A stretch of 64,000 nt of DNA, taken from NCBI GenBank assembly GCA_965637545.1, contig OZ281495.1, positions 26,226,001 to 26,290,000 of the forward strand, in the 5' to 3' direction. The notes below the pieces were generated by a model. That model made no database searches, was not told the origin of the DNA, and worked only from the letters and a program-made list of their open reading frames with translations. Shown here piece after piece: positions 4,601 to 60,668 of this stretch. Made by a program: the position numbers and the translations under genes. Each line of letters starts with the position of its first letter. The stretch's first letter is position 1. The stretch is from Phallusia mammillata. Its lineage: Eukaryota.

Positions 4601-6657
4601 ATTGTATTTTAGACGATTCAAACGCGCTTTGATGGAAGGGTTAACTTTAAAAGACCCTGGGAAGATTACAAGACTGGATTCGGAAATCCGTCTGGGGAAT
4701 TTTGGCTAGGTTGGTTTTCACATACACAAGATTTTCAAGTTTTTAAATTAAAAAAATCTCGTTTATCACATGCTTCTGCATACGTAGGTTTGGATAAAAT
4801 CCACGCAATGACCCAATTAAAATCCTGCCGAGTTCGATTCGATTTGACAAACATCGGCGAAGAAGAGACATTTGCCGAATACAGGTGAACAAATATAACT
4901 AACCCCATAAAGCTTCTCTTCTCTAAGGAATGTTTGTACATATAGTTAACGCAGTTACCTAAGGTAAGTTAAATCGTGGATAAAATAGTTGCAATATCAC
5001 AATTTCGGACTATTTGTGACCAAAAGTTCGAAACGTGTTGGCCAATTATTTAATGGGAGAATAGAAAGTTTAATTATTTGCAGTGTCAAAATTTGTAAAA
5101 AAGAATATCAGAAGTGTTACCGAATTTATGTAAAAGCATCGTGCCAATAAATGATAAGCTGCAGATAATGCACATTGTTTCGACCTATAAGGTCTCAGGT
5201 CTCTCTATAGACTATAGTGTAGCCATTCAACGGCACTCCAGTTTGCTGAGAGTAACAGGGCAAAAACCCATGCCTCACCTAGTCTGTGCGATGCCACAAC
5301 TGGGCATACACCCCAGAGAAAACTGGCTCACAATGGCCAAGCAACTGCTTGAGAACCAAAGTGAAGTCGGCTCAGTGTCACAGTATCAATGTAAAAGCAT
5401 CGAGCCATTAAGTGATAAGCTACAGACAGTGCCCAGTGGTGGCATCGCAGTGACTATAGGTGAGGCATGGGTTTTTACCCCGTTACTCCCAGCAAACTGG
5501 GGTGCCGTTGAATGGCTACACTAGCCAATGCGGCCGTTCTCTAGTCACCAGCGGCACTGATGATACCTTGTAGGTCGAAACAGTGTGCACTGTCTGTTAG
5601 CGACTTGTTTTAGTCTTATAAGCCCTACCAATCTGATCTATTCCCCGAGACTGTCTCCCCCATTCAGTAAACGGTCCAGAACCCAACAATAACGGTTCAC
5701 CGCGAAAGCCGGATACACCTAACACTGCTTTTGCTAAAAGGGCGTCTCACAGTTTATTATATTATTAGTTATGTCACGTACAACGTCACACCAACGTAAA
5801 CAAATCAGGTCTCTTTACCTGAAAACTACCGCGGCATGTAAAAACAACGTCAAGAAAACGACCGTACACTAGACGCCCACAAGAAGACTGGCCGTCCATT
5901 AACATCACCGTTGATTAATCACCGGCTTACACATTTTTACAAGGTTGCCCGGTACATCCGGGAGCGACAATCGTGCGTGGAAAAAACATGCAACTTTAAC
6001 AAATAAAAATAAACCAAATGAAAACAGCTTTAGGTGGAAATAAGGGATTAGGTCAAAAATAAGAAAAGATGACTTCAAAAATATAACATGTAAGAAATAC
6101 ATTTAAAGGTGAACATAAGTGAAAAGTCATTTGCATAAGTGAAATATATAAAACGCAAGTGCGACATTTACACCAAATAGCATAAACAGATAAAAAAAAC
6201 GTGTCATAAGTTACAAACAAATCAACAAGAAAATTTACAGCGGCTGACATGTGAAACATTTTCGCCACAGACGTTTTGAAGGCCTTACCACTCCAGAGTT
6301 TAACTTTTTTGCAGGTTTTTCGAAATCGGTTCGGAAAGCGAAAACTACAGAATGATCATATCTGGCTATATGACGTCATCAACTCGTCCTGATTTGATGG
6401 ATTATCATAACGGGATGCAGTTCTCCACGTATGACAGGGACAACGACCTTTATTCGTAAGAATACTGATGTTTGCATTAAATTTCAGCTGAGTTATTTTT
6501 TGTTATTTCCAGTGGCAGTTGTGCGCTTGGTGGTGTTGGTGGTGGTGCTGGATGGTGGTACAGCGAGTGCATTCGTGCGAACCTGAATCGGATTCCCCAG
6601 GCCTATTGGAACCCATCAAAGTTTGACGTTGCTGCAATAAGCATAAAGTGCGATTAA
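1683..6657 (+). CDS. g1: secreted SP-LCCL-LCCL-EGF-FReD protein, open ORF of 430 aa
   Basis: Exons 1683-1776, 2092-2247, 2377-2502, 3274-3426, 3786-3875, 4234-4350, 4482-4558, 4613-4709, 4788-4884, 6315-6455, 6513-6657; all GT-AG, total 1293 nt, no internal stop. Signal peptide [25 protein letters not shown]-like [61 protein letters not shown]. FRe[37 protein letters not shown]. Confidence 0.9.
5130..5630. repeat. Foldback / inverted-repeat element in g1 intron 9 (copies at ~41970-42470 and ~20695-21125)
   Basis: Arms AAGCTGCAGATAATGCACATTGTTTCGACCTATAAGG and CCTTGTAGGTCGAAACAGTGTGCACTGTCTG are imperfect reverse complements. There is an internal direct repeat TGTAAAAGCATCG..TGATAAGCT. Confidence 0.7.
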
Positions 6658-11666: not shown

Positions 11667-14600
11667 ATGAATTCACCGAAAGCTAGTGGCTTGGTGCTGA
11701 TTCTATTATTTGACATCATCACGGTTTTATTGGGACAGTCAGGTAACGCAATGATATTACCAAATGATGACTTAACTGTATTGTTCTATATTTGCATTGT
11801 TTATAATCGGGTGTAAATTAAAGGAAAACGGTTTAACGTTCCAGTAAAATAATTGCAATTATACTGCTGGTTTGAAGTACCGCTAAGAGTTTCATCGCGA
11901 AGGTATATCACATATTTTGGCCTTTTTGTATAATTTTTATTGATTAATATAATTTCTTGGACGGATGCATTGCGCCTAACATGACCCACACACAAAAATG
12001 TACAACGAATTTTAACTAGAAGTATTGCTTAAGTGACGTGCAAGACACAGTTTTCTGACTTGAAGCACTCAATCACGAGCGTGATTTGCCCTGCTAACTG
12101 CTGGGAAGAAAATCCGTCGTTGTGTGGAAATGGGGTCTACACAAGCGGCCCGATATGTCTCGCAGCAATGCACGACCAACAGATTGACAGTGAGTGAAAC
12201 CAAATGCCTGTTGTCGTTTTATAAGAAGCATCATATAAATGAATATTGCTCTAGATTTCGGGGGACTTGTTCAGGTTTTTCGCAATCCGGGCCAAGGAGC
12301 TCATTTGTACGGACAACAAAGAAATGGCGTTCAATCTCAAACCTGCTCTGCGGGCAAATACTCTTACACATTTTCAAGTAAGAATTTGTTAAACAGACAT
12401 AGTGTTTTATTACCTTAAAATTGTGTTAGTGACTTGCAAAACAACTGGCGACAGTGAATTAGCGATTACCCATGTATACTGTCCGGCAAAATGCACCGGT
12501 GCTTCGTACACGTACAAGAGTGGAAAATATTTCACCAACAGCTCTGTCTGCGCTGCTGCAAAAAAGCGAGGAACGATTTCAGGTTCGTGAAATGTTAAAA
12601 CTGTACGAAGATGTTGGTTCGGCAAAAGTTTTTATTTTCAAGCAAAAGCGAATGCCTGCAAGCTTGATTGCTCTTGGCTGATCTGTTTGTCGCTTCTACG
12701 ACTTGATACTAAAACTGTGTGGATTTGTATTTCACTTGCGAAAAACATTTTTAGGAATATTAGGTTGTCTCATCACGATTTTTTTAGCACAATAAAAATG
12801 TGGATCTGTAATTAGCTTGAGAAAACGTGTTTCAGTATTATGAAGGTTGTTTCATTTGTTTTTACAGACGCTGGTGGCAAGGTTGTTATCTATGCGATGA
12901 AGGCAAAGGCGTACAACGGCACAAACACGACCAACACCGACTGGTTTTCGTTCGATGGTAAAACATTTTTTAACGTTTTGCACTATGCTGTAGACAACGA
13001 AAATGTTAAAGACTGTAAATATGGTTTTACTGGTGACGCAAATGCTCCAAGCATTAATTAGCATTTTAGTTTACCTCACTAGCACCAACTTATAATGCAA
13101 TATTAACATGAAAAGGACTCCCGGAACCCACTTGACCGTCGACCCTTAGGTTGCACATTTATGTTTTGCTGTTTTAGATTTTGACGTTTGCTCCTACGTG
13201 AACCCGTGTGCAAATAACGGCACATGCGTCGACTTGTTCGCTGATTATGGCTGCTTGTGTCCAGAAAAGTACACTGGAAGGAACTGTGAGACCGGTAAGT
13301 CGATTTCATAAATATAAATCATAAATTTCATAAATTACCTCGTGCGCACTCGGTTCTTGGTTCTTACGCAGTATTTCGCAATAAATTAGACAATAGGAAA
13401 TTTCACTGTGCATACATTTGTTTGTGATCCTGAGATTAGTTTAAAACCAGAAAGACATTTGTATTCGGGCACAAATGTTTTGTTGCACCTATTTAGTAAT
13501 TACAAATTATTCTTTTTGACAGAATTGCATTGTGCCCCGGGAAGCCAAGAATCTCTACTTGCCGAAAAATTAAAGAGTCTCTGTTCACAAGGATGGGCTG
13601 TGAGTTATCATCACTATACTTTAAATTTCCTCTAGCTAACGGTTGTATTTTAGACGATTCAAACTCGCTTTGACGGAAGTGTTAGCTTTTTAAGAGCCTG
13701 GGAACCTTACAAAACTGGGTTTGGAAAACCGCCCGGGGAATTTTGGCTAGGTTCGTTATGGATTTTGTTGTGTTTAAATCAATTGTATTTTTATTTTTTT
13801 GAAATAAATGTTTCCAGTTACGAAAACTGCCACAATCACGAGCCGATAGGTTTCAACACTAAAGAGGATATTACTAAATCGAATGTTTGAGCCATAATAC
13901 TTCACTGTATTACCTGAATATTTTTCTAAATACTCCCCAAACCTGTTTAATTTTGAAAAATTCTTACCGCTACCAACAGTAAAAGTACACAAATACAGTT
14001 TTCACATAAACAAGAAAAAGTTTTTCACAAGATTTTCATCAAGTTTTGAATTAAAAAGAAATCTTATTTCAACTCATGCTTTTGCATACGTAGGTTTGGA
14101 AAAAATTCACGCGATGACCCAATCAAAATCCTGCCGCGTTCGATTCGATTTGATTTGACAAACCCCGGCGAGGAAGGGAAATTTGCCGAATACAGGTGAA
14201 CAAATAAAACTAACTCCATAAAGCTTCTCTTCTTTAGATAATATTTGGAAAGATTGTTAACGCGGATAACTAAGCTAACACCTACAACACCATACTTGCC
14301 AAAAGTTGTTTGTAAATAAAAGTTTAAAACGTATTTGCTACCTATTCAATAGGCGATAAGAAGGTTGAACTATTTGCAGTGTCGAAATTTGTGAAAAACT
14401 TTATCAAAAGTATTAAAAGCGTTTCGAATCAGTTTGACTTTTTTTGCAGTATTTTTCAAATTGGACCGGAAAGCGACAACTACAGACTAAGCGTTTCCGG
14501 CTATATGACGTCATCAACTCTTGTTGATCGGATGTATTCTCACAACGGGATGCAGTTCTCCACTTACGACAGGGACAACGACCTTTGGGCGTAAGAATGC

Positions 14601-14782
14601 TGATGTTTGCATTAAATTTCAGCTGTGTGATTTTTGTTATTTACAGTAACAAATGTGCGGTGGAAGAAGGAGGTGGATGGTGGTACCACACCTGCTCTAA
14701 TGCCAACCTGAATCGGATTCCCCGAGCGCGTTGGGACACATTATATTTTGACGTTGCGGCAATAAGCATAAAATGCGATTGA
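11667..14782 (+). pseudogene. g2: SP-LCCL-LCCL-EGF-FReD paralog with a single frameshift in FReD exon 9
   Basis: Exons 11667-11742, 12034-12189, 12255-12377, 12430-12582, 12868-12957, 13178-13294, 13523-13599, 13654-13750, 14094-14195, 14450-14590, 14647-14782. Exon 9 is 102 nt versus 97 nt in paralogs because of a 5-nt duplication (GATTTGATTTGA), giving TGA at 14156-14158. All other exons are open. Confidence 0.85.
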
Positions 14783-18789: not shown

Positions 18790-21700
18790 ATGCATCGTTC
18801 ATCCTGCTTGAATGTGTACGCGGCGATTGTGTTTATCTGGACGGTTTGTTTCGATGGCATCTCCACCGAATACAATCCTGCAAATCAGACAAATAAACTT
18901 TAGATTTTATCTTAAAGTATGTGAATATATATAACCGCAAAAAATCTCATTTTGCACTCGATGTTGTCTAAATTTCAAAAATGCTGGATGATAATTGGTT
19001 TTCTATCACCTGTACGTTTGAGCCAGCGACGAAGCTAATCATAAAACAGTATTTAAACGAACCAAATAACACACAACCGGTTACAAACTAACGTATCACG
19101 TTTTGGCCACAATCTGCAACAGCAAAAAAAATTAAATTGTAACGTCGGGAATTTGCGCGCCTGGTACCGCGCTGGCGTCACACTAGAGAAGTCCAATTTC
19201 TGGAAACGCGTGAATTTATTTTACACGTCGACACGGTTCAATACGACACGGTAATCGCGTCACGTTCACGGTAGACACGACACGCCACGGTTTTCTGCAA
19301 AGAGAACATTCACTCAAAAATGGGAAACAGAAATTAATTTTAAGCCGGCAGAAATAAAGCTTACCAGAGTTTTGGACCAGGGTATCAAAGATAAACACAG
19401 TTTGATATCGTCAGAAAGCGTTCTACACAGATGAAAATCGATAATTCAAATGTACGGCAAATCGGGCAACTGAAATACAAATCAAGCTTACCTTGCAAAG
19501 GCAACATTATTCCTTTTCGTCAGAGTTTTTAAGTTTATAAAGCATTACCATCTATTAATGACAAACAAATTATAATTAGTCACTTTCATTACTTTATCTA
19601 ACGGCTGCAAATTCAAGTCAGCAACTAACGAACTACACGTGGTTCAAACAAAACTCAAATACTAAATGGCCAAAGCACAGCATAGAGAAATAAACTACAA
19701 TGGTATTGTTACGTCATAGGGGATTCTGGCATTGTGGTGCAATCACACCATATAAGATGTGACGAAGTTACGGTTGAGTGATTTACGATGTTACATAAAT
19801 AATCACCTGTAAAATTGCTTGAAAAACTAAACTTGGCAGATATACGTACTTTCTGACTTTTTTGTATGTTTTGTACAATTACGTGCAAGACTCGGTTTGC
19901 CGACTTGAAGCACTCGATCACGAGCGTGATTTGCCCGGCTAACTGCTGGGAAAAAAATCCGTCGTTGTGTGGAAATGGGGTCTACATCTACACAAGCGGC
20001 CCGATATGTCTTGCAGCAATGCACGACCAACAGATTGATAGTGCGTAAAACTATATGCCTGTTGTCGTATTTTAAGAAGCACCATGTAAAAGAACATTAC
20101 TTTAGATTCCGGTGGAATTGTTCAGGTTTTTTGCAATTCGGGCCAAGGAGCTCATTTGTACGGAAAACAAAGAAATGGCGTTCAAACCCAAACCTGCTCT
20201 GCGGGCAAATACTTTTACACATTTTCAAGTAAGAATATGTTAAACTGACATAGTGTTTTTTTACCTTAAAATTGTGTTAGTGACATGCAAAACAACTGGC
20301 GACTGCGATTTACCGATCACCCATGTCTACTGTCCGGCAAAATGCACCGGTGCTTCCTACACGTACACGAGTGGAAAATATTTTACTAACAGCTCTGTCT
20401 GCGCTGCTGCGAAAAAGCGAGGAACGATTTCAGGTTCGTGCAATATTAAAACTGTACGAAGATGTAGGTGTGGCAAATTTTTTTGACAAACAAGGCTAAT
20501 GTGTACAAGCTTGATTGCTCTCGGCTGGTCTGTTCAGAATTGTAAACGGGCCTAAAATTGGAGCCCGAACCCGGACCGAACTTGTAAGTACAAGCCCGAA
20601 ACCCGGCCTGAACCCGAATCGTTTTTGAGAAGCCCATTTAGATGCGAAAGTTCGATTGACAGGCCTATACAAGCCTCAGAAAAGAAAAAGACAACAAACA
20701 CAATAGACAATGAGCTGCAGACAATAAGCTGCAGACAGTGCACACTGTTTCGACCTATAGTCACCAGCTGCATTGATGATACCTTATAGGTCGAAACCGT
20801 GTGCACTGTCTGCAGCTTAATGTCTATTGGCTCTATGCTTTTTCATTGATACTGTGACTCTGAGCCCACTTTACTTTGGTTCCCAAGCAATTGCTTGGCC
20901 ATTGTGAGCCAATTTCATCTGTGCTGTATACCCAGTTGTGGCACCGCACAGACTAGGTGAAGCATGGGTTTTTACCCTGTTACTACCAACAAACTGGTGT
21001 GCAGTTGAATGGCTACACTAGCCAATGCGGCCGATCTCTCGTCACCAGCTGCACTGATAAGACCGTATATGTTGAAACAGTGTGCAAAGTCTGCAGCTTA
21101 TCATTTATTGGCTTTATGCTTTTACTATAGACAATCGTTCTTAAAACAAGGCACTTTTGGCCTGTTCGGTCAGATCCAGCAACTGGCTACTTAGCCCGTT
21201 AAATTTATGGCTAAAAATTGTGAAAGTCAGGCCCGATCAAGCCCATGTCGTTGAAGAAACTTTAGCCCAAACCCGGCCCGAACCCGGTCCGAGCCCGACC
21301 CTAAAAGCCCAGGGTTGTCATCTACGCGATGAAGGCAAAGGCGTACAACGGCACAAATACGACCAACACCAACTGGTTTTCTTTCGATGGTAAAACATTT
21401 TTATACGTTTTGCCATATGCTGCAGAAGAACAACAATGTAAAAGACAGTAAATATGGTTTTTCTAGTGAGGCATATGCGCCCAAGTATCAAATAGCATTT
21501 TAGCCTATATTACCAAGGCTACACAAACGGTTGACAAATGGTTTGAATCAGGGATAACCTCATTACTTAAAGACCAATTAACCTTAATACAATAACCTCA
21601 TAAGCCGAGCTTTTTGTGTAACTAAAGTTTTGTTGTTTATCAATCACACTTAAATGCTCAGACACAGTTTACAGTAAAATTGGAGTGGTTTTGTTATATT

Positions 21701-23463
21701 GCGGTGAAAAAAAACTTTCAATCTTTTTTGAACAATATTCTCTCACAAACAAAATACAAAACAAAAATGATATAATTCCTCACTAGCACCATCTTATGAT
21801 GTAAATGTACGTCTCTTTGCTGGCCACAGATTCCCTTAAATAGGATCCCCGGACCTCATTTGACCGGTGACCCTTATGTTGCACATCCCTGTTTTACTGT
21901 TTTAGATTTCGATGTTTGCTCCTACGTGAACCCATGTGCAAATAAGTGCACTTGCGTCGACTTGCTCGCTGATTATGGCTGCTTGTGTCCGGAAAACTGG
22001 AAGGAACTGTGAGACCGGTAAGTCGATTTAAGACATTACAACGTGCGCAATTGGTTATTGGTTTCTACACATTACTTACGCAATGAATTGGACAAATGGA
22101 AAATTTACTGTGCAATACATTAGTCTGTAGTCCAGGGATTTGTTTAGACTAGAAATACTTTTGTATTTGGCCACAGAAGTTTTGTTGCACCTTTTTAGCA
22201 ATTAAGAATATTCATTTTGCAGAATTGCCTTGTTCCCCGGAAAGTAAAGAATTTTCACTTGCTGAAAACATAGAGTGTCTCAGTTCACAAGGATGGACTG
22301 TGAGTTATTATTAGTCAACTTTACTTTTCCTTAAAGTAACGGTTGTATTTTAGACGGTTCAGACTCGCTTTGACGAGAGTGTTAGCTTTAATAGACCCTG
22401 GGAAGATTAAAAAACTGGATTTGGAAATCTGTCTGGGGAATTTTGGCGAGGTTGGTTTTTGATTCTTGTGTGTAACCGCGGTAGTAGCTTTTTTGTTGTT
22501 GAAAAAACATTTTTCCCTAAGAAATTTGACATAAAACACAAACTGATAGGTTTCAATACGCGAGGGGGTGTAGTTTACTAAAACAAACGTTTCGCCATAA
22601 TTGTTCACTGTGATACCTGAATATATTTCTAAACACTCCCTAACCCTGTTAAATTTTGAAAAATTATTACTGCTACCAACAGTAAAAAGTACACATATAC
22701 AGTATTTACGTAAACAAGATTTAAGTTTTTGATTAAAAAAAATTTCGTTTAAACACATGCTTGTGCATTCGTAGGTTTGAAAAAAATCCACGCGATGACC
22801 CAATCAAAATCCTGCCGAGTTCGATTCTATTTGACAAACCGCTGCAAGGAAGAGAAATTTGCCGACTACAGGTAAACAAATATAACTAACCCCATAAAGC
22901 TTCTCTTCTTTAGGTAATCTTTGTAAATATTAAAACAAAGGGAGGTTTAATCATGGATAAAATATTTGCAATATCACAACTCGCGAAAAATTATGACTAA
23001 AAGTTTAAAACGTATTTGCCAATTATTCAATACTCAAAAAGAAAGTTTAACTATTTGCAGTGTCGAAATTTGTGAAACAAATTATTAAAAGTATTTAAAG
23101 CCTTTGGAATCAGAAGTTTTACTGTTTTTAAAGTTTTTTCGAAATTGGCTCGGAAAGCGAAAACTACAGACTGAGCATTTCCGGCTATATGACGTCATCA
23201 ACTCTTGATGATCGGATGGCTTATCACAATGGGATGCAGTTCTCCACGTACGACAGCGACAACGACCGTGTTACGTAAGAATGCTGATGTTTACAGTAAA
23301 TTTCAGCTGGGTAATTTTTGTTATTTACAGTTCCAATTGTGCGGAGGTTTATGGAGGTGGATGGTGGCACAAAAGCTGTTTTAGTGCCAACCTGAATCGG
23401 GATCCCAAGCCTGATTGGGGACCATACTTTGACGTGTCCACAATGAGTATAAAGTGCGATTGA
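18790..23463 (+). pseudogene. g3: multiply disabled SP-LCCL-LCCL-EGF-FReD pseudogene
   Basis: Exon-1 donor GT>AT at 18884. Exon-2 acceptor AG>AA at 19877-19878. The 5' end of the LCCL2b exon is replaced by an insertion (junction ~21312). There is a 5-nt deletion in the EGF exon (21906-22017) and a TAC>TAA nonsense in the FReD1 exon (~22408). The remaining exons (20106-20228, 20281-20433, 22223-22299, 22775-22871, 23134-23274, 23331-23463) are recognisable. Confidence 0.9.
20536..21312 (+). mobile_element. Composite insertion: CCCGAACCCG-type element ends enclosing a foldback repeat, truncating the g3 LCCL2b exon
   Basis: Starts CAGAATTGTAAACGGGCC. CCCGAACCCG motifs occur at both sides. The internal palindromic segment (~20695-21125) is homologous to 5130-5630 in reverse orientation. 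Confidence 0.6.
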
Positions 23464-25608
23464 CACGGTTTTAACGTTTGACAACAACCTGATTTTGTTA
23501 CTTTTGTTAGCTTTTAATTTAACGCAATATTTCTTTCTTCTCAAAATTCCTGCGCTAACGGCTTATAGCTAAAACCAATTGTTACAACGGTGACTTCGCT
23601 GCTGGCCAAAAATATTATATATTGTAATTAATAAAACCTTTGAAAGGTAACGTTCGATCACGTTACGTTACAGCAATTATCACGTTGCGTTATTGCAAAA
23701 CAAAAAAGCAGCACAACAGCACTAAAACTATCGCGCACACTTCACCGGGGCCAGGAGAGAACTGCCTCACCAAACACGAGGAAAAACGACGTCAAATGCT
23801 TCCCGGAATGTGACCAATCACAACGCGCCACGGGAAATAACTGAAGCGGGGATGCGTTCGAATTTTACCGGTGTTATAAAGTACAAAAAATATATTAAAG
23901 TGAAAAAGGGTGAAAATGGAACACAGGAAAACAAAAGCGGAAAAACAAAGAAGTGAAAGAAATAACGTGAAAATAAATATGGCTAAACAAAAAAACGAAC
24001 ATTATGAAACAAAACAACTAATAAGCGTATATCAAACTGAACGTACACAGTGAAACACACATATATTGATAGATAAATATAAATAAAGTTACTGTGAAAA
24101 TCAAGTGCAATAATTAAATAAGCGTATGCCAAACTAAGTGAACACAGTGAACAAACAAACTAAGTGAACACCGATTTACATTACACTTACACACTAAATT
24201 TAAATCGAATTTGACGGCAAATTATTTATCAAATCATAATCAATTTATGTATATCAGAATATTCCAATTATCAGTTAATAAAGTTCCAGCCTGACTCTTT
24301 ATAAGAAGGGTTTCTTGCGCTGTTGATGCCTTTTCACACAATAAGAACTTGTCCATATGTTTAAATGTGCTTGAAGTACGAGCTTATGACAAATTCACTT
24401 TGCTGCATTTTTAATTACCTTGTTGATCCTGTGCTTTATCGCTGCAGTGTGAGCCAGATTTTCGAAACTGGCACACATTATGATACTCCACTTGCAATTC
24501 CAGTGAAAATACCTTTTGTGAGAAAAAACAAGTGTAGAATATATTATTGCTAATTTTAGCAAACCAAAAGCGATACCTACACCGTTAGACCAATGCAGTA
24601 ACATTTGTCGACAAAAATCTTATCAAAATTCACTTACGTGTCTTTTTTGAGTCCTGAAACTTTCGTTTGTTTCCGTATATATTATCTTATGGATTAAAGT
24701 ATTTGTACGAACAGAAACTGTTTTATTGTGTCATTTTATCGTTGTGTGGGAATATACTTATCGTACACTCATGTTGGTGTTTTGCTTTCATGGTGATTTG
24801 GTGATTGTAAATTATTTGTTTCCAAGCTGTTAAAATTGGGTTTTAGCACACCCGACAAATGAAATAATTAACTCAAAGAAAATAAAGGGATGGAATCAGC
24901 TTAACAAATGATAGTTTCGCGGTGATATATACGCACACGCAAAACTCAAGTGATAGAAACGTACATTATGTTTACTCAATTCGAAATACATTCCAGTTCA
25001 TCATTTATAAATATATTCAGTGTGAGAAAATCGGACCCAAAAAAACAACAACCATGCATGCGGTGTGTAGTGTGACTTGTTTTTATATGAACGTACACAT
25101 ACCGTTCTGCAACGCTTCTTCAACCCACAAAGTGTAATGAGACCGATTCGTGGAACTAAAGCCTCACTTATACACGAATAGTGATTGTTGAATAAAGTCG
25201 TGCTTGGTTATGGCGGAAGTTCAACTTGTGTTGGATTAGAATAGCAAAATTCGGGCCCAATTCGAATGTATTATGGTATACCACTGGACAAACCAATCAA
25301 ATATGGCGCTTAATTCCATAAGTAAAACCAAGTGATTTCTGTCTATCACATCAGCTGGAAATTTGTTATAATGGATAAAGGGTAAAAATATTTTTTAAAC
25401 CTTTTCCTAGGCGTGTTATTATACTTTATTGGTAATTAACAATTGAAACTATCTCATTTTAGCCTACTATGTATGCAATTATGTGCGGAGTTTTTGTTTA
25501 ATGTGATCGTAAGGTGTCGCTCCTGGGGTGTGGCAACACTTGATCGAGTAGTAGTCTACAGCGTGTTGATTCTATGTTGGCGCTCGTAGCGAGCGGACGC
25601 AAGCAGCA

Positions 25609-26988
25609 ATGGAAAAAAGTCCTAGTTTTGCGCAAGTTACAACAAAGAGGTGGGGAACGTTTGAAGAGACGCACTTGCATGAGCTTTAAAACAAGAAGTC
25701 AAAGCAAAAGAGAAGATGTTGTCAATATGATAGAAAAAGAAAGCTTTTCAATAAAGAAGCTGGTGGGAATATCTGAACGAAAGGGAAATTTAGTGGACGT
25801 GACGTGTACCACAAGAAAAGCTGTACTGGAGTTGTACGAAAAATTGGTACAAGTTGATGAAGTATATTCGGTAAGACTGTATGAATCCGACAACTTAAAT
25901 GTGGCGGTGGGTTGGGTACCTATACCCTTTCCTAACGAGGAAATTAAAAAAGAATCTGAGAAAAGATATGGTGATGTAAAAAATATCCAACACCGGAAAG
26001 ATAAAAAAGGACTATTAACTGGAATGAGAATTCTCACTCTTGACAGAGCCGATGTGGAGAAAAACCCAATCCCAAGCTATGTTACGATGAACGGATATGA
26101 ATTTTACTGCACGTACAACGGGCAACAAATAACGTGCAAATACTGCACAAAACCTGGGCACAAACAACAAAACTGCCCTGAAAGAATAAAAGACTACCCG
26201 AAACTGGAAACAAGCCAAAAAGTAACCGCGAAAGGCGTTGATTGCCCCGCCACCGATAAGAGTGGCAACAAGGGCGCTGGAGAAGATAAGAGTTCAGACA
26301 AGCCGATTGGGGAACCGCTAGATTTGGACACCGCCGACACCTTCACCAAAACGGGTGAAATTGAGATAAGCAACACAGAAACAAGGTTGCCTGAAACAAA
26401 GCAAATTAGCAAGCCCCCTATGGAACTAAAGCAGGGTTCGTCGAGAAAACGCCATGAAAGAAGCCCAACTGAACCAAACCTGCACCAAGCAAAATCAATC
26501 AGCCTTAGCGAGCTAAAAATCCCCATTTCCTGCCCAATATGCGATGAAGATGGATACGTGACAGAGAAACACACCAGTTTCTTTTGTTGGAAATGCTCGT
26601 TGGAGTTTAACATTGCCACAGCGTGCTGCAACGAACTGGACCGATTTCTGGTCCCGGATAAGGAGGTGACAACGAACTGCACCATCTGCAATCAACCTAT
26701 GAGGAAAATGCCCTGCTGTCACAAGTTTCAGAGTATCAAACCGACGAAGGTACTTTCGAATGTCTGGAATGCGAAAGGTACGCGATGTTTTGCGTGTGTA
26801 AAACCGTTAACGCAATACCCAAACGAACCATGACGACCAACTGTCTAAACAACTATTGCAAGTACACAATTGTTAATTGTAACTGTGGGAAGAAAACCTG
26901 CCAACTTTTGGGGCTTAACAAACCCTATCTTTGCGAATGCGGCTTTGAATATGAATTTGACATCGAAATAGGTGTAGAACGCGTTTAA
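25609..26988 (+). pseudogene. L1/Tx1 ORF1 (RNA-binding, zinc knuckle, Cys-rich tail), two inferred frameshifts
   Basis: ATG 25609 gives MEKSPSFAQVTT and must shift into the long ORF (25574-26833). The Cys-rich frame DEGTFECLECERYAMFCVC...CECGFEYEFDIEIGVERV ends with TAA 26986-26988, directly before the ORF2 ATG at 26989. Confidence 0.7.
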
Positions 26989-29900: not shown

Positions 29901-30796
29901 GTATCTGGTTAAACAACAAAGTAATATTCAAACGAAAACCCATCGCCTTCGAAAGCTTTATAAACGCTGGTATACTAAAGTACCAACAAATTATAGACAA
30001 CAATTTAGACTATCACAGCTTCGAAAGCGTTTGCGAAAATTACCAATTGATAAACAACAATCAAAACCATGCAAACTACCAGTGCCTTATTGCGGCAATT
30101 CCAACAACTTGGGAAACTTTTACACCTGACAAACCAGACAGAGAAACAGTCCTGGACAAAATATGGACAGGAATAAAAGACAAATTATCCACAGCCAAAA
30201 ATGCGTACGAGTTCTTTGCTTCGGGTAATAAACAGCAACCGATCGAGCAGCAACAAAAATGGGAACTAATTCTACAAGCGGCGCCCTTAAACTGGTCAAA
30301 CATCCACAAAAACTTGCATGAATGTACAATGGAAACTAGACTGCGCTCCTTCCAAATTAAATTCAACCTAAGAGCCATTGTTCTAAACGATGGGCTTTAT
30401 GGATTTGGGATTGCGGATGCTGATGTGTGCACATTTTGTGGTGTGTGCAGAGAAACCATGTATCATTTATTTTGTGAATGTATTCATGTCCAGGTATACT
30501 AGGAAAACGTAAGTGCCTGGATTGACAGTGCCATGTGTAATCGAATCGACCTTAACAATTGTATAAAACTCTTTGGAATCCACAATGAATGCTTTGAAAA
30601 AGGTTTTTTAACTTGATTAACTGCTTGCTTTTGATGGTTAGATTTGTTATTTACAAAAGTAAGATTCAAAAACTGAGGCCAAAGGTGGAAATGTTTGTTT
30701 ATGAGATGAAACGTTGTAAGTGCAATGAAAAATTTGTTTCTCGAAAAAATGATACTATGTGGAAATATAGATTGAAGTGGAATGCCCAACTGCGCT
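26989..30796 (+). pseudogene. L1/Tx1 ORF2 (APE endonuclease + reverse transcriptase + zinc finger), disrupted
   Basis: Consecutive ORF fragments 26989-27612, 27639-27872, 27800-28240, 28303-28890, 28891-29211, 29237-30502, 30613-30798, separated by small indels and TAG stops. Confidence 0.92.
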
Positions 30797-38546: not shown

Positions 38547-38593
38547 TGTTTCAAACTCACCCAGCGATCATTGGTTAAACTTGTATATTTTAG

Positions 38594-43493
<4,900 letters not shown>

Positions 43494-48148: not shown

Positions 48149-51100
48149 ATGATTTCACCGAAAGCTAGTGGCTTGGTGCTGACTTTCTTATTTGACTTCA
48201 TCGCTGTGTCATTGGGACAGTCAGGTAACGTAATGACATTACCAACTGATGACTTAACTGTATTGTTTTATATTTGCATTGTTTACAATCAGTCGTAAAT
48301 TAAGGAATAACGGTTCGACGTCCTGACAAAACAATTGCTACTGGATAGACGAACCGCTAAGAGTCCCATCGCAAATGTATCACATATATCAACTTTTAAA
48401 ATACTGTTTCAAAAATTCATTTATAGTCAGTACTACTTTCTGGGCGAATGCATTGCGCCTAACATGACCTACACAAAAAATGTACAACGAATTTAAACTA
48501 AAAGTATTGCTTAAGTGACGTGCAAGACACAGTTTTCTGACTTGAAGCACTCGATCACGAGCGTGATTTGCCCGGCCAATTGCTGGGAAGAAAATCTGTC
48601 GTTGTGTGGAAATGGGGTCTACACAAGCGGCCCGATATGTCTTGCAGCAATGCACGACCAACAGATTGATAGTGAGTGAAACCAAATGCCTGTTGTCGTT
48701 TTATAACAGGGGTGGGCAAACTTTTCAGTGCAAGGGCCGCATTCAAAAGTTTATAGACTTATCGGGCCGCATGGTATTTCACCAACGGCCGCCAATTGCT
48801 TGCTTGTTGTTTTGTTTTAAAACAACTGATGTAAAGAATAAGGTTTGTATCATATATATACCATTTAAAGTCGCCGAAGATGCTCTAATTAACAATTTCT
48901 AACTTGTGCACAAGTTTAGCTGAACAGAGCTAACTGTTTATGACGTCATAAACTGTATTGTGACGATTGCAGTGCCCGTTTTTTCGCATTGTTTGCACAT
49001 AATAAGCGGATAAAAAGCCTGGCGCATATGGTTACTAGATTGGTAATCTTTTTTCCAGTCCCACGAAATCTGTTTCAGCAGTTTGAAAATCAAAATATTT
49101 AGCAAAATAGATTGCGGCCGCAGGTTGTGCACCCCTGCGCAAAATTATTACATAGTATATTTTCAGCTTTATGCAAATACGTTTGTTCATGATTGTACAA
49201 ACAGTGGTTGAAACGCTACAATTGTAGGCTAATTGTTTTTTTTTTAAAAACAAGGGTTTGTTGCAACAAAGGCTGAATTTTTTAAGGTGTTTAATTTCTC
49301 CAGCGGTTTCCCAAAATTTGGAAATGGCTATTTTTTGGTATTTAAATGAAACACTTGCGGTCTCTTAAAACTACTTTGCGGTCACCCAAACCAAACCTTA
49401 TAAAAAACTGATCGTGCGGGTACAGATACTGCACATGATATTGGTATCGGCAAGTCACACCCCCGGTATTTTTAAAACTCTGCGCCTGTGCTCATAGTAC
49501 TATTCAGCGTTACTCGGAAACATTTGGCGGGCCGCATGCGGCCCGCGGGCCGTAGTTTGCCCACCCCTGTTTTATAAGAAGCACCATGTAAAAAAAAACA
49601 TTACTCTAGATTCCGGTGGACTTGTTCAGGTTTTTCGCAATCCGGGCCAAGGAGCTCATTTGTATGGAAAACAAAAAAATGGCGTTCAAACTCAAACCTG
49701 CTCTGCGGGGAAATACTCTTACACATTTTCAAGTAAGAATATGTTAAACTGACATAGTGTTTTTATTACCTTAAAATTGTGTCAGTGACCTGCACAACAA
49801 CTGGCGACTGCGAATTACCGATCACCCATGTCTACTGTCCGGCAAAATGCACCGGTGCTTCCTACATGTACACGAGTGGAAAATATTTTACTAACAGCTC
49901 TGTCTGCGCTGCTGCAAAAAAGCGAGGAACGATTTCAGGTTCGTGGAATGTTGAAACTGTACGAAGATGTAGGTGCAGTAAAAGTTTTTTATTTTCAAGC
50001 AAAAACGATTGCCTGCAAGCTTGATTGCTCTTGGGTTGTCTGTTTGTTGCTTCCACGACTTGATACAAAAACTATGTGGTTTGGTAAATCACTTGAGAAA
50101 AGCATTTTTTAGGAATACGAGGCTGCGTTTTTTGTTCAATAAAAAAGTAGATGTGAAATTCGCTCGCGAAAACATGTTTTAGTAATATGAAGTCCTTTCA
50201 CAAACAATTTCTTTTCACAGATGCTGGTGGCAAGGTTGTCATCTATGCGATGAAGGCAAAGGCATACAACGGCACAAACACGAGCAACACCGACTGGTTT
50301 TCTTTTGATGGTAAAACATTTTGTAACGTTTTGCAATAAGCTGTAGACAACGACAATGTTAAAGCCTTTAAATATGGTTATACTGGTGACGCAAATGCTC
50401 CAAGCATCAATTAGCATTTTAGTTTATATTACCAAGACCACACAAATGGTTTACAACTGGATTGAATCAGGGGACCAAATAAATTACCAATATTGAAATA
50501 ACCCTAAACGATCCTTTTTTCAAACAAAAGTTTTGTTGTTTATCAATCAAGCTTATATTCTCACAAACAGTATTCATGAAATTAACAACCGATTGATGTG
50601 GTACTGTTATGCTGTGGTAAAACTTCAATTTTGTAAACAATATTCTCTCACAAACAAAATACAAAACAAAAATGATATAATTCCTCACTAGCACAAACTT
50701 ATAATGTAAAAATAACATCTGTTTGGTGGCCACATATTCACTTCAAAAAGGACCCCCTGAACCTTGCACATCTCTGTTTTACTGTTTTAGACTTCGATGT
50801 TTGCTCCTACGTGAACCCGTGTGCAAATACCGGTACATGCGTCGACTTGCTCGCTGATTATGGCTGCTTGTGTCCGGAAAAGTACACCGGAAGGAACTGT
50901 GAAACCGGTAAGTCAGTTTTGGACCCAGGTTTGTCGTGTTTCTACCTTGCATTCATGCAATATCAATTCAGCGAATGAAAAATGTGATAGTTGCATTGCA
51001 TGCTGAAAAAATAAAATGTACGGTGCATTGATTTGTGGACCACGGATAAGTTTCAGACCATAAGGGCATTTGTTTTTTGTCGCATGATTTTCTTCACACC

Positions 51101-52377
51101 TATTCATGTAGCAATTAAACATTATTCTTTTTGACAGAATTGCCTTGTGCCCCGGGAAACCAAAAATCTGCACTTGCCGAAAAGTTAAAGAGTCTCTGTT
51201 CACAAGGATGGACTGTAAGTTATCATCAGTCTATACTTCACATTGTCTTAAACTAACGATTGCGGTTTAGACGATTCAAACTCGCTTTGATGGAAGTGTT
51301 AGCTTTCGTAGAACCTGGGAAGATTATAAAACTGGGTTTGGAAATCCGTCTGGTGAATTTTGGCTGGGTTGGTTTTTGATTCTTGTGCGGAAATCAATTA
51401 CATATAAGAAATCGGCCACAAACACAAACCGATAGGTTTCAACACTGGAAAGGATATTACTCAATCGAATTTACTAAATCGAGTGTTTGAGTCATGATTC
51501 CTCACTGCAAAACCTGAATATTTTTCTACATACTTCCCAACCGTGTTAAATCTTGAAAAATTATTACCGCTACCAACGGTAAAAGCACACAAATACAGTG
51601 TTCCCATATACGTTTTTCCGAGATTTTCATCAAGTTTTGAATTTAAAAAAAAATCTCATTTAAACACATACTTCTGCATACGTAGGTTTGGATAAAATTC
51701 ACGCGATGACCCAATCAAAATCCTGCCGAGTTCGATTCGATTTGACAAACCCCGGCGCGGAAGAGAAATTTGCCGAATACAGGTGAACAAATATAACTAA
51801 CCCCGTAAAGCTTCTCTTCTCTAGTTAATATTTGGAAACATTGTTAAAGCGGATAACTAAGAACGTTTGATCATAGATAAAATAGTTGGAATATCACAAC
51901 CTGCAAATGTTTGTGATTAAATGTGTAAAAAATATTTGTTAACTATTCAATGGGCGATAAGAAAGTTTGCAATGTCGATATTTGTGAAAATTTTTGTTAC
52001 AAGTTCTAAAAGCCTTCGACTCAAGATTTGTTTTGCAGTTTATTTAGAATCGGCTCGGAAAGCGACAAGTACAGACTGACCATTTACGGCTATATGACGT
52101 CATCAACTCTTATTGATAAGATGGATTATCAGAAAGGGGTGCAGTTCTCCACGAATGACAGAGATAACGACCGTTCTCAGTAAGAATGCTGACGTTTGCA
52201 TTAAATTTCAGCTGAGTGATTTTGGTTATTTACAGTAACAATTGTGCGGTGGTAGATGGAGGTGGAGGTGGATGGTGGTACAACAACTGCGCTCAAGCCG
52301 ACCTTAATCGGAATTCTCATCCTTATTGGCAACCATTTTATTTTGACGTTGCCGCAATTAGCATAAATTGCGATTGA
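48149..52377 (+). CDS. g6: secreted SP-LCCL-LCCL-EGF-FReD protein, open ORF of 422 aa
   Basis: Exons 48149-48224, 48516-48671, 49610-49732, 49786-49938, 50221-50310, 50791-50907, 51138-51214, 51271-51367, 51686-51782, 52039-52179, 52236-52377; GT-AG, total 1269 nt, open. Leader [25 protein letters not shown]. Confidence 0.9.
48707..49569. mobile_element. Non-autonomous hAT (Charlie-like) transposon in intron 2 of g6
   Basis: Perfect 16-bp TIR CAGGGGTGGGCAAACT / AGTTTGCCCACCCCTG and perfect 8-bp TSD TTTTATAA. The empty site is visible in g2 (~12215-12225). Confidence 0.93.
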
Positions 52378-55999: not shown

Positions 56000-57554
56000 C
56001 CAGGAATACTAACATTTGGTTATAGGAATTCACAAAAAATTGCTTTGGTTCTCATATTCATATCTGACTTGATCAGGACTCAATGGGACATACAGGTGAA
56101 GTAACAATACTAGCCACCTGATGTTTTTTATATGTGCACTGTGTTGTTTCAACTAGTGGTAGAAGCGATCCACCAAGTGACTAAGACTAAATCTTGCCGA
56201 ATTAGGTTTAACTTGACTGATTATGCGTCCAAGTTTGTACAAGCAACATACAAGTAAAATCATTAGCCATAGTTTGTGTTCCAAATACTTTTTAATAAAA
56301 GATTGTAACAACTGACTCAATTCTTTCATAATGATAGTGTAACAAGTATTGTTGAATTATTTGACAAAAATCATCCCGCCATATCGATTTAAGCTAGTTT
56401 TCGAAGCTCTTCTGTATGCGACACGGCATAGGATAGGAAAATTAGAAAGTACGACAAGAGCTTACAACGCCAAAGCAGGCTGTAATTTTAGCCTATACTG
56501 TTGCTTGGAGATATGCTTGAGAGATTTGTTCGATTGTGGCGTGCTGTAAAGTAAAGTCGTGCTTGGTTAAGACGGAAGTTAAACTTGTGTTCGGATCAAA
56601 ATTGCAAAATTTGGGCCCAATCGGAAAGTACAAGCCCAAACCCTGTCCGAACCCGAATCTTTTTTTTGGAAGCCTCTTAATGCCCGAAAGTTTAATTGAC
56701 ATGCATATATGCAAGCCTACAAAAGTACATCCGTACATAATATAATAACGAACACATATACATTGGAGAATAATATACAATGGCCTAAAACGCATTTTAG
56801 GTCGGTTTGGTAGTAGGTCCAGCAACTTTAGCTACATGCAAGGAGAATATTTATGTATTTTAGCGTGAGTCATGGGCTAGGTCCAATTAACAAGACTGCT
56901 TTCTGAGAAAAAAATACGGTAAATTGCCCCTATAAGAGCTTTCATGTCGTGAAATTAAAGTAGATAGTCAGATGTTTGTCGTAAATAACCCGACTGATTT
57001 AAATCAAAAAGCAAAACTTGATTTTCATTTAAAACATTTTACGAAATCAACATCACACGGTGGTACTCATGATTTAGTTACTTTGAAATCTATCCAATCC
57101 TTATCACTTGCAGGCTATTTAGCGAACGCCGTTTCGTTATCCTTCATTCTCATGTTCATAAACATGGCTAGAAGTAAACAGACCACTTAGTGATGTAAAG
57201 TCACCCGCATTAAAATCACATTGGCAGCTGGGTATCGGTGTCACGATGGTCTTTTGAAGTGTTGTCTTCACAAACTGTGACAATCTGTTTTATTTCAATA
57301 CCCCTGATCGTCACACTTTTCTTGTATCCAAATTTATTACTTATTGATCTCTAACTATATTAATGTTTTCATCTAACAGAGGGGCCAATTGTGCCAGCAA
57401 CCGGGGTGGTGGCTGGTGGTACGGTCAGTGCGACTGGACGAACCTCAATGCTCTGTGGTGCAACACGTGGCCGTACATTAAGTGGTATGCAGGCGGTCCT
57501 GCTTCAAACAAAAAGGCGTTCAAGGCTGTTTCCATGCAAGTCCGGTGTGACTAA
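56000..57554 (+). pseudogene. g7: fragmented relic of a type-C (g4-like) gene
   Basis: The signal exon has lost its ATG by deletion (~56025-56095). Intron 1 is fused directly to the FReD2 exon (~56160-56252, EAIHQVTKTKSCRIRFNLTDYASKFVQATY). The FReD3 exon is missing and replaced by spacer-type sequence. The last exon 57380-57554 is intact (..GGGWWYGQCDWTNLN..MQVRCD*). Confidence 0.85.
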
Positions 57555-58374
57555 AGACTTGCTTGCTGCATATAGTGTTGTTTTTTGTTACGATCTTCAA
57601 CATGTTCTGCGATAACTTTGCGCATATACAACTGTCCTGTTTCATTGAACAGTCATCGCACACCAGAGCAGCGATTTTTTGCAAATTTTAAGTGTTTAAA
57701 GTATGACGTTTCGAGTGACTATAATATAGTCACTATATTTTAACATGCATAATGGATCACAGATTGCCTTTCAGGCTAGCATTGCCGTAATGTGTTGATA
57801 ATAAAAAACGCACCTCGGAAAAAAGGAACAATCTCTTTGACAAGATGTTTGTATTACAGATGTGGCGTGTTGTAAGCAGGATGTCTGAACGAATTGGGTT
57901 GTACCTATATGCCCAAATTGATTTGAAATGTATGTGGCAAAGAAAAGGTGGTTTTGTATTACCGGGGAGCATACAATGATAAATATATAAAGTATAACTC
58001 GTTTATTATGGCCAATTTAAGTCATTTACAATCGCCTAAAATTAAAATTATTGATTTACATCTAGTTTACTGGCAATGCGCCTGGTTAAAACAACAATCG
58101 AATGTAGTTTTTTGTGCTTATAGCTCCTCGGTAAAATTACTGACTTTTACACGGCATAAACATTAGGTTTCGAAGCTTATATTCTTTCCAATTAGTTGAG
58201 GTACTTCTTTTTGAGGGATGTTAGTTTTTGCCCCCCCCAAAAAAAAAAACGAAAAAACTTTTCAGCCAGGCCAGAATGTCAACGGGAAACGCAGTACTAG
58301 TTCGTGTTTTCTTTTGCTTGAAGGTAAAACAAGTTTCATAATTTTTCTCATCCGAAACAAGGTCTCTTCTGATC

Positions 58375-60668
58375 ATGTATCGTTCATCCTGCTTGAATGT
58401 GTACGCGGCGATTGTGTTTATCTGGACGGGTTTCTTCGATGGGATCTCCACCGAATACAATCCTGCAAGTAAGACTAAAACTTTAATTGTGGCTGCTATC
58501 TGTTCTATAGGACAGACCAAATTATTTTTTCAAAATAAACTTTACAGCAATAATTTACAATAAAGTGTTGCGTGAATTTACAAGTATTTCAAACATATAA
58601 AATAAAACGGTAAAGTGGCTTGATAGATATTATAATCCAATCAACATTTTGTCGCATATAGTATACTTCATGTATAATTTGTAAACGTTACTCTTTTGTT
58701 ATGAACATACAAGTCAATAATTGTGGGTATAGTTTTTCCGTTTATACCCGAAAACAATGCACATCAGTGTTAAAACGTTTTATAACCAGGAATCGGCTTG
58801 CATTTTCCTGTCAAGACTACTTCATGCGGTTATCAATGGTTTATATTAAACTGAACGGAGAAACGAACGGAAAAAAAGAAGTGTAATCTTAATTACTTGT
58901 TGCACATTGGCCACACGTCCGAAATTGTGAGACCGGCAAGAATCCTAAAGTACAAACCAAAAACCCGGCCCTGTTTTTTTTTAACTAAACAATGTCCGCA
59001 TTAGGCCGTAAAATAATCGGTATTAGGTCAAACGCATTGCAGTGTGAAGTAGATACCGAAATAAGCCTGTTTAAAGCAAACATTAGTTGAAAACCCGGTT
59101 TGAACATGCGCGGTCCTCGGATTGCAAACTCTTTGGTTAACAGTTTTACTTTTATAGATTTTGACGTTTGCTCCTACGTGAACCCGTGTGCAAATAACGG
59201 CATTTGTGTCGACTTGCTTGCTGATTATGGCTGCTTGTGTCCGGACAAATACACTGGAAGAAACTGTGAAACCGGTAAGTCGATGTTAGAGACTACTCCT
59301 GCGCAATTGGACATTGATTCTTACACGGTATTTACGCAATGAATTGGACAAATAGAAAATGTATTGTCCAATGCATTGATTTGTAGTCCTGGGATTAGTA
59401 AAAACCAGAAATACATTTGTATTCGGTCACATAAGTTTTGTTGCACTTATTAAGCAGTTAAGAATATTTTTTTGGGCAGAACTGCTTTGTTCCCCGGGAA
59501 GCCAAGCATCCCCACTTGCCGAAACTCTGAAGAGTCTCTGTTTACAAGGATGGACAGTGAGTTATAATAATTCCATTTTACATTTCCCTAAACTAATAAT
59601 TGTATTTTAGACGATTCAAACTCGCTTTGATGGAAGTGTTAGCTTCAATAGACCCTGGGAAGATTACAAAACTGGATTTGGAAATCCGTCTGTAGAATTT
59701 TGGCTCGGTTTGTTTTTGATTCTTTTGTTCAACCGAAATAGTAGCTTATTTCTTCGTTAAAAAATAGTTTTCCGTAAAAAAGTGACACGAACACAAACCG
59801 ACAGGTTTTAACACTAAGGGAGATATAGCTTACTAAAACAAACTTTTAACCACTATTCATCACTGTAATACCTGAATATATTTCTTAATACTCCCCAACC
59901 CTGTTAAAATTTTGAAAATAATGATCCCGTTTAACCACATGCATCTGCATACGTAGGTTTGGAAAAAATTCACGCAATGACCCAGTCAAAACCTTGCCGA
60001 GTTCGATTCGATTTGACAAACATCGGCGAGAAAGAGACATTTGCCGAATACAGGTAAACAAATATAACTAACCCTATAAAGCTTCTCTTCTCCTGTTAAT
60101 ATTTGTAAACAATGTTACCGCGGATACTTAAAGTAAGGTAAACCGTGGATAAAATAGTTGCATAAAAATAGTTAAGCAATATCACAACTTGCGAAAAAAT
60201 GTGATTAAAAGTTTAAAACGTATTTGCCAACTATGTAATGGGCGATAAGAAAGTTTGACAATTTGCAGTTTCGAAGTTTGTGATAAGTTTTATTAGAAGT
60301 TTTGAAAGTCTTTCGAATCAGAAGTTTTACTCTTTTATAGTTTTTTCGAAATCGGCTCGGAAAGCGACAACTACAGACTGAACATTACCGGTTATATAAC
60401 GTCATCAACTCTTGTTGGTCGGATGAACTATCACAACAGGATGCAGTTCTCCACGTACGACAGGGACAACGACCTTCGCACGACGTAAGAATGCTTATGT
60501 TTGCATTAAACTCCAAGTGATTTTTTTTCCAGTCACAATTGTGCGGAGAGTCGTGGAGGTGGATGGTGGTACAGTAGTTACGGACGTGCCAACCTTAATC
60601 GGAACCTTCAGGCTTATTGGAGCCCATCACTATTTGACGTTGCCGCAATAAGCATAAAGTGCTATTGA
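58375..60668 (+). CDS. g8: LCCL-less SP-EGF-FReD paralog, open ORF of 253 aa
   Basis: Exons 58375-58468, 59158-59274, 59480-59556, 59611-59707, 59957-60053, 60341-60484, 60533-60668; total 762 nt, in frame (phase-1 exon 1 to phase-1 EGF exon). No LCCL exons lie between 58469 and 59157. Confidence 0.85.

Follow-up and report, generated by a model that had tools for sequence, protein, structure and literature searches.

A tandem array of genes for secreted lectin-like proteins

The 64,000-nt stretch of Phallusia mammillata DNA analyzed here (positions 26,226,001 to 26,290,000 of contig OZ281495.1; hereafter the window) holds a birth-and-death tandem array of ascidian genes for secreted lectin-like proteins with the architecture LCCL-LCCL-EGF-compact fibrinogen-related domain (FReD). 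Our subject is the segment of these genes that encodes the rim of the binding site, a rim much more variable than the remainder of the protein, together with the short intron just upstream of it. An original prediction had described hypervariable loops beside a near-invariant intron and had taken them for a signature of diversifying selection; the observation is real, yet it was overstated.

By tblastn with the exon peptides of one copy (g2), self-BLAST and MAFFT alignments of the window, nine related gene copies were mapped in tandem, all on the + strand and with GT-AG at the exon borders of every copy. Six copies are of type A, in which the last exon ends in a common 11-residue tail; the three type-B copies have a longer P domain and the C-terminus SMEVRCD. 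The type-A exons follow the order signal peptide, LCCL1a, LCCL1b, LCCL2a, LCCL2b, EGF, F1, F2, F3, F4 and F5, and Pfam searches with single exons confirmed LCCL, EGF and Fibrinogen_C domains. The gene list of the original prediction lacked g5, the sixth type-A copy.

2091-6657, + strand: g1 (type A), gene body from LCCL1a to the stop, no lesion seen
12034-14782, + strand: g2, type A
19878-23463, + strand: g3, type A
38599-43493, + strand: g5, type A, last exon 43349-43493
48149-52377, + strand: g6 (type A), signal-peptide exon to the stop, no lesion seen
59158-60668, + strand: g8, type A
72-855, + strand: g0, partial type-B gene, last exon 691-855 with the long P domain, used as a control
31796-37403, + strand: g4, type B, last exon 37239-37403
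up to 57551, + strand: g7, type-B fragment, last exon 57387-57551

Three of the type-A copies, i.e., g2, g3 and g5, carry lesions and are probably pseudogenes, unless the lesions are assembly errors:

14139-14159, + strand: g2, 5-nt tandem duplication of GATTT in exon F3 (102 nt vs 97), frame shifted
22408-22410, + strand: g3, in-frame TAA in exon F2
41194-41210, + strand: g5, 1-nt deletion in exon F1 (76 nt vs 77)

In g3 there are further lesions: the EGF exon is missing 5 nt near 21996, the acceptor of LCCL1a is lost, and there is an insertion at that of LCCL2b. The g5 copy is also without an LCCL1a exon. In g8, the second P-domain Cys is replaced by Tyr (TAC, 60579-60581), and the gene otherwise looks intact. 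The original prediction had taken neither pseudogenes nor recombination into account.

The 3' 2.3 kb of g5 were found by self-BLAST to be 97% identical to g1, and both genes carry, on the + strand, an insertion of ~1.2 kb in the F3-F4 intron (5100-6250 in g1, 41940-43090 in g5) that is absent from g2, g3, g6 and g8. Given that this insertion is common to both, g1 and g5 derive from one recent 2.3-kb duplication. A 136-residue open reading frame within the g1 insertion (5114-5524) had no Pfam match.

Relatives of these genes are transcribed. A profile of exon F4, searched against 1.84 billion representative proteins, had as its second-best match P0002 (422 residues), and follow-up searches yielded P0151 (427 residues) and the partial P0191 (231 residues). 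All three are Phallusia mammillata transcripts that bear the UniProt name "Ficolin-2-like"; as such, they indicate that the family is transcribed. They are ~84-94% identical to the window exons and identical to none, are spliced at the inferred junctions, and each has a further variant of the variable patch described below, with scaffold and open frame kept. A fourth protein, P0004 (205 residues), is 100% identical to the FReD exons of g4; there were no contigs on record that encode it. Given that the transcripts are known as protein only, the codon tests below were confined to the window copies.

A variable patch in the last exon next to a slowly evolving intron

Exon F4 ends with the Ca site and is followed by the last intron, by the variable patch, i.e., the first ~100 nt of the last exon (37 codons in the analyses below), and by the conserved tail. 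The Fibrinogen_C assignment of exon F4 comes from a Pfam run on the homologous g2 exon, not on that of g1.

6315-6455, + strand: g1 exon F4 (FReD), Ca-site DRDND and Leu-Tyr at its 3' end, supported by GT-AG borders and frame
6456-6512, + strand: g1 last intron, 57 nt, 4-6 differences from the introns of g2, g3 and g6
14591-14646, + strand: g2 last intron, 56 nt, motif match
23275-23330, + strand: g3 last intron, motif match
43292-43348, + strand: g5 last intron, motif match
52180-52235, + strand: g6 last intron, motif match
60485-60532, + strand: g8 last intron, 48 nt, 8-nt deletion, 7-11 differences over 48 nt
6513-6621, + strand: g1 variable patch, from the Ca loop through the two P-domain Cys to residues past the conserved Trp
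14647-14746, + strand: g2 variable patch
23331-23427, + strand: g3 variable patch
43349-43457, + strand: g5 variable patch, 2 changes relative to g1, both non-synonymous
52236-52341, + strand: g6 variable patch, extra GGAGGT repeat unit in the Gly run
60533-60632, + strand: g8 variable patch, second P-domain Cys replaced by Tyr
6622-6657, + strand: g1 conserved 11-residue tail and stop, tail dN/dS 0.17

The last-exon peptides quoted in the original prediction were matched exactly on the + strand (g1 6514-6630, g2 14648-14755, g3 23332-23436, g6 52237-52350, g8 60534-60641). Divergence was computed from g1, g2, g3, g6 and g8, with g5 omitted as a near-duplicate of g1. Among these copies, the mean pairwise difference was 9-17% for exons EGF, F1, F2, F3 and F4, and 25% for the last exon. 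The most diverged exonic window of 56 alignment columns was the patch itself, with a proportion of differing sites (p) of 0.345, the noncoding median being 0.277. A fixed scaffold consisting of the DxD Ca ligands, Cys-Ala, GGWW(Y), the second Cys (Tyr in g8), NLNR and Trp runs through the patch, and the positions between these residues vary, as had been claimed: at least four residues occurred among the five copies at 10 of the 37 patch codons and at 6 of the 186 codons elsewhere (Fisher p = 2e-5). The further claim that the LCCL and EGF exons are roughly 90% identical held for the EGF exon (91% among the copies) but not throughout the LCCL exons. On the + strand, the LCCL1b exon of g1 (2382-2504) and g5 (38599-38721) shares only 51% amino acid identity with that of g2, g3, g4 and g6, compared with ~90% for the adjoining LCCL exons, and the LCCL module is therefore also mosaic or divergent.

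With up to two mismatches allowed, a 35-nt motif from the last intron had five matches in the window (6456, 14591, 23275, 43292 and 52180), where none was expected; the middle of this conserved intron reads TGTTTGCATTAAATTTCAGCTG. The mean pairwise difference of the last intron was 12.5% (8.3% without g8), compared with 22-31% for the other four introns and 0.22 for the size-matched F1-F2 intron of 54-56 nt. Among 777 overlapping noncoding windows of 56 columns, the last intron tied for the least diverged with the first 56 nt past exon F3. The contrast between loops and intron that had been predicted is thus real and about 2-3 fold, although the intron is slow rather than invariant and is not unique in this regard. 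The start of the F3-F4 intron (GTGAACAAATATAACTAACCCCATAAAGCTTCTCTTCTC..., at 4885-4945, 14196-14255 and 51783-51845) is as conserved as the last intron (p = 0.123) and holds TAACTAAC, a branch-site-like motif near the 5' splice site.

RNA structure or a small RNA within the last intron was considered and rejected, as the consensus fold (-5.7 kcal/mol) contained no compensatory pairs, the z-score obtained for a single sequence was -0.74, and no Rfam match was obtained anywhere in the window. A scan of metagenomes for the intron motif likewise gave 0 matches. Gene conversion limited to the intron is unlikely because the adjoining exon F4 has ordinary synonymous divergence (pS 0.25); in addition, the intron changes are mostly private to single copies. 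The rate at which the last intron evolves is roughly a third to a half of the neutral one, most likely through purifying selection on the splice signals that make up most of a minimal intron. Its splice signals may also carry exon definition, given that the start of F5 is free to vary. A point against a strict splicing constraint is that g8, which otherwise looks intact, has a freely diverged intron.

Tests for selection on the patch and its inferred place in the binding pocket

Counting by the Nei-Gojobori method gave non-synonymous (pN) and synonymous (pS) divergences of 0.303 and 0.319 for the patch (omega, i.e., dN/dS, 0.94) and of 0.101 and 0.239 for exons EGF-F4 (omega 0.38). Compared with the rest of the gene, pN of the patch is thus raised ~3-fold and pS 1.3-fold, the excess being nearly all non-synonymous. 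As an internal control, the last exon of the three type-B copies of the same array showed a pN of 0.046 and a pS of 0.158 (omega 0.27). At 0.32, the patch pS is close to the values for the introns and the other exons (0.14-0.30), and this speaks against hypermutation as well as against the presence of old cassettes in young flanks. Using an a-priori partition in which superfamily-conserved columns were defined from 38 distant FReDs, the 26 patch codons that are not superfamily-conserved had an omega of 1.31, and comparable superfamily-variable codons outside the patch an omega of 0.68.

These values bear directly on a mutational hotspot, in which the mutation rate of the patch would be raised by error-prone repair and slippage near the G-rich (GGN)n run and would generate the variability in the absence of selection. 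The length of the GGN run does vary (a GGT-rich stretch in g1 and g5, the extra GGAGGT in g6), and the 1.3-fold rise in pS is in the expected direction. However, non-synonymous changes make up nearly all of the excess, the codons that vary most are found as far as 60 nt from the Gly run, and the type-B exons are conserved despite having the same GGGGWW core. We consider a hotspot highly improbable as the source of the amino acid changes; slippage in the GGN run may nonetheless alter loop length.

We also compared site-class models M1a and M2a on the six type-A sequences, using our own Goldman-Yang codon likelihood program with F3x4 frequencies. For F4+F5 on their own tree, M2a (log likelihood -1052.35) was preferred over M1a (-1059.59), with a likelihood ratio statistic of 14.5 (chi-square p = 7e-4) and a class with an omega of 3.4 that comprised a proportion of 0.23 of the codons. 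For EGF-F3, the same comparison gave p = 0.08. In 59 replicates simulated under M1a, for which branch lengths were kept proportional to those estimated under M1a, the 95th percentile of the statistic was 6.6 and its largest value 9.1; the real data, refitted in the same way, gave 13.7, a value reached by 0 of the 59. A posterior of at least 0.8 was reached by 11 of the 37 patch codons, by 3 of the 46 codons of F4 and by none of the 11 tail codons. The refuting conditions that had been set out with the original prediction came out divided, one arm against the idea and the other in favor of it. As to diversifying selection itself, the claim was borne out in part: M2a and the clustering of sites speak for it, while the counting omega of 0.94, at or below 1 and with omega = 1 within its interval, goes against it.

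In order to place these codons, we used the structure of FIBCD1, in which Ca is bound by Asp393, Asp395 and the main-chain carbonyls of 397 and 399, Cys401 and Cys414 form a disulfide with a cis peptide at Asn413-Cys414, and the S1 acetyl pocket is lined by Tyr405, His415, Tyr431, Ala432 and Trp443 (PMC3908420). The spacing from DxD to Cys (6 residues) and from Cys to the second Cys position (13 residues) is the same in g2, g3 and g8 as in FIBCD1, making the register unambiguous; in g6, g1 and g5 the Cys-Cys spacing is 15-16 because of extra Gly. In this register, the flagged codons correspond to FIBCD1 397, 398, 399, 404, 405, 412, 413, 415 and 416 (403 reached a posterior of only 0.5), with two or three more around the conserved Trp after NLNR. 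The strongest sites were 397, 399, the His415 position and the residue past the Trp. As Ca uses the carbonyls of 397 and 399, the side chains at these two positions are free. The predicted equation of the loops with the ligand site agrees with this register, which puts the flagged codons on the Ca loop and the rim of the S1 pocket, and the DxDND Ca motif was indeed kept in all copies.

The position equivalent to His415 holds I, S, F, A, G, T or R, i.e., residues other than the His of the canonical acetyl site. The original prediction that the acetyl-binding Cys-His is replaced was correct for the residue after the second Cys (I, S, F, A or G in type A, D in type B) but understated the change, given that the pocket wall is missing too: type A is without the ~17 residues that carry the Tyr431/Ala432/Trp443 wall, and the acetyl pocket as described therefore cannot form. 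Judged from sequence, the canonical pocket is largely removed and not merely mutated, and the ligands are presumably not simple N-acetyl groups.

Several lines of evidence place the proteins in the FReD superfamily. Exons F2 and F4 scored 36.8 and 35.5 bits against Fibrinogen_C (PF00147; cut-off 22), the last exon alone 21.3 bits, and P0002 is annotated with PF00147; profile, fold, Ca site and P-domain disulfide all agree with membership. The fold was modeled on the paralogue P0002, which is ~86-94% identical to the window exons, and not on a window protein. The AlphaFold 2 model of P0002 residues 236-422 had a pLDDT of 84.6 and a pTM of 0.83, with confidence dipping to 68-75 at residues 141-150 and 161-180, the blocks in which most of the variable loops lie. 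The first 12 residues of the modeled segment had a pLDDT below 50. Its top Foldseek matches were M- and L-ficolin (TM 0.80, root-mean-square deviation 1.5-1.8 Å), and its superposition on M-/L-ficolin, FIBCD1 and tachylectin 5A (TL5A) gave TM scores of 0.78-0.81. The A subdomain is much shortened in the F1 exons (e.g., 4482-4558), with ~25 residues from the first Cys to GWT compared with the usual ~45.

The explanation that we propose is as follows. The last two codons of F4 and the first ~100 nt of the last exon would encode the Ca-binding loop, the disulfide-bridged loop and the segment after NLNR, i.e., the elements that by analogy with solved FReD lectins would form the S1 ligand pocket and its rim. 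This patch takes amino acid changes ~3 times faster than the rest of the gene, overall at about the neutral rate, and positive selection for new ligand specificities probably acts on ~10-14 of its rim codons. The gene anatomy, the rates, the clustering of the variable sites and the family membership are established by the data, whereas positive selection, a change of ligands and an immune function are inferences. The reading with the best support is positive selection on about a dozen of the rim codons, and we lean toward it with some reserve; it is plausible and unproven, and the evidence is suggestive, not conclusive.

A number of points weigh against positive selection. The whole-patch dN/dS of 0.94 had a bootstrap interval of 0.52-1.60 and the omega of 1.31 for the 26 variable codons one of 0.72-2.50, and in the three pairs among the intact copies (g1, g6 and g8) pN was lower than pS. 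As both intervals include 1 and the intact pairs have pN below pS, counting cannot separate neutrality from positive selection. The codon models were run with home-made code, checked by a small null simulation only, on just six sequences, of which two are near-identical in the F4+F5 segment and three are pseudogenes. The whole array is recombinant, and recombination inflates site tests; in F4+F5, 32% of the informative site pairs are incompatible. The pocket mapping rests on FIBCD1 spacing and on a paralogue model rather than on coordinates of the window proteins.

The main rival explanation is relaxed constraint; cassette exchange and a hotspot are minor ones. With a truncated type-A P domain and the acetyl pocket lost, the loops would bind nothing specific and drift neutrally, the scaffold being kept for folding in an array that is decaying. 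The counts just given are consistent with this, as is the fact that patch pN, patch pS and intron divergence are all close to one another. Of the six copies, three are pseudogenes; moreover, g8 is without a disulfide Cys, and ~17 pocket-wall residues are missing. On the other hand, M2a beat an M1a that already contains a neutral class, and no null simulation reached the real value. Ten of the 37 patch columns hold four or five residues among five copies, beyond what neutral drift readily gives, three distinct expressed transcripts keep scaffold and open frame, and both the tail (omega 0.17) and the scaffold of the last exon are strongly constrained. We therefore regard relaxed constraint as possible, though on balance doubtful. 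Pseudogene decay as the main source of the variability was rejected: the patch pN was the same in pairs with and without pseudogenes, which indicates that the variability predates the lesions, and pN elsewhere was uniform (0.085-0.117).

The trees differ along the gene, in that g5 joins g3 in the EGF-F3 tree (support 93) but g1 in the F4-F5 tree (support 100), and a PHI-like test gave p = 0.001 for the whole coding sequence and p = 0.35 within F4+F5. Under cassette-like exchange, the intron and the tail with the 3' untranslated region would serve as homology anchors between which a patch of ~100 nt is swapped by gene conversion, with pseudogenes as possible donors. The bracketing of the variable segment by conserved flanks, the mosaic array and the incompatible site pairs in F4+F5 all fit such an exchange. 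Sub-blocks also occur in differing combinations, in that P0002 equals g2 in CAVEE and RWDTLY and differs in the middle block, and there is a precedent in the snake three-finger toxin genes, termed ASSET (PMC2474615). However, the whole patch is common only to g1 and g5, as part of the 2.3-kb duplication and not as a cassette; there is no spatial recombination signal in F4+F5; the patch pS is not clearly above that of the flanking exons, as old cassettes in young flanks would give; and the intron-adjacent exon F4 has an ordinary pS. We consider cassette-like exchange unlikely in general, and very unlikely in the specific form in which the intron and the 11-residue tail with the 3' untranslated region are anchors and the pseudogenes g2, g3 and g5 donate the patch, be it in the germ line or even in somatic cells. 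If it did occur, the array would generate FReD binding sites combinatorially, in a chordate without antibodies.

Tunicates are the sister group of vertebrates and, to our knowledge, do not have adaptive immunity of the antibody type. With the canonical acetyl pocket gone, what is left of the pocket rim differs in nearly every copy of the array. If the diversification is adaptive, the array would provide, on a single scaffold, a small natural collection of variant binding sites for glycan arrays and for studies of how FReD specificity is encoded.

Other features of the array and comparison with known systems

Three observations concern the wider array. A candidate signal-peptide exon on the + strand is common to g1 (1683-1760) and g8 (58375-58450) and is unlike that of g2 and g6 (M[NI]SPKASGLVL...), indicating that the array contains two alternative 5' exons. 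In g4 (31796-37403, + strand), LCCL1a and LCCL1b are 90-94% identical in amino acid sequence to those of g2 and g6 and are joined to a type-B EGF and FReD (EGF 61% identity). Between g3 and g4 (25574-30502, + strand) lies a degenerate retrotransposon without long terminal repeats, of the LINE (long interspersed nuclear element) type, with separate open reading frames that matched Exo_endo_phos (AP-endonuclease, 9.7e-12), RVT_1 (8.6e-12) and zf-RVT.

The window proteins share with FIBCD1, M-, L- and H-ficolin and tachylectin 5A the Asp-x-Asp Ca site, the GGWWY and NLN motifs and the 13-residue Cys...Cys spacing (in the window, the positions in g2, g3 and g8), and E-values to the chains of solved FReD lectins ranged from 1e-22 to 1e-32. 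They differ from FReD lectins with an S1 site in the shortened A subdomain, the replacement of His415 and, in type A, the lack of ~17 wall residues. At the N-terminus, LCCL-LCCL-EGF stands in place of the collagen-like stalk of ficolins and the transmembrane and coiled-coil part of FIBCD1. A true ficolin has a collagen-like domain and binds MASPs. In the window genes, the FReD is preceded by exons for a signal peptide, a pair of LCCL domains and one EGF domain, and P0002 and P0151 contain no collagen-like Gly-X-Y region of the ficolin type; complement activation by the ficolin route therefore cannot be assumed. Ascidian ficolins from Halocynthia roretzi and Botryllus are cited in a review (PMC5465252). 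The window genes resemble these as FReD-bearing humoral proteins of tunicates, and differ from them in having no collagen-like domain.

A parallel for the conserved intron and fast exon segment is provided by ASSET in viperid three-finger toxins, where the introns of paralogues are more alike than short exon segments for the interacting surface (PMC2474615). Unlike ASSET, the window patch consists of alignable point substitutions at about the neutral rate and not of replacement by unrelated sequence, and only one short intron stands out, the others diverging like synonymous sites.

The FREP families of invertebrates, i.e., the snail, oyster and mussel FREPs and the mosquito FBN/FREP proteins, are characterized by tandem FReD duplication, a diverse recognition domain and presumed pattern recognition. 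The window array shares with them the tandem FReD duplicates, the concentration of diversity in the recognition domain and a presumed function in pattern recognition. It differs in the LCCL-LCCL-EGF partners, as opposed to the immunoglobulin superfamily domains of snails and the coiled coil, or no partner, of many others, and in having a chordate host; no evidence of somatic diversification was seen in the window. No immunoglobulin superfamily exon of the snail FREP type was found among the window genes. In word-limited protein searches, the LCCL pair had no relatives outside Phallusia, and the LCCL-LCCL-EGF-FReD architecture, recovered there from Phallusia only, appears to be lineage-restricted; a literature search for LCCL-FReD proteins of tunicates yielded no publication. 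Arrays of immune lectins whose binding loops vary are to be expected from other invertebrates, and the present result extends known biology and overturns nothing; its novelty lies in the domain architecture and in the occurrence of a truncated P domain in a tunicate.

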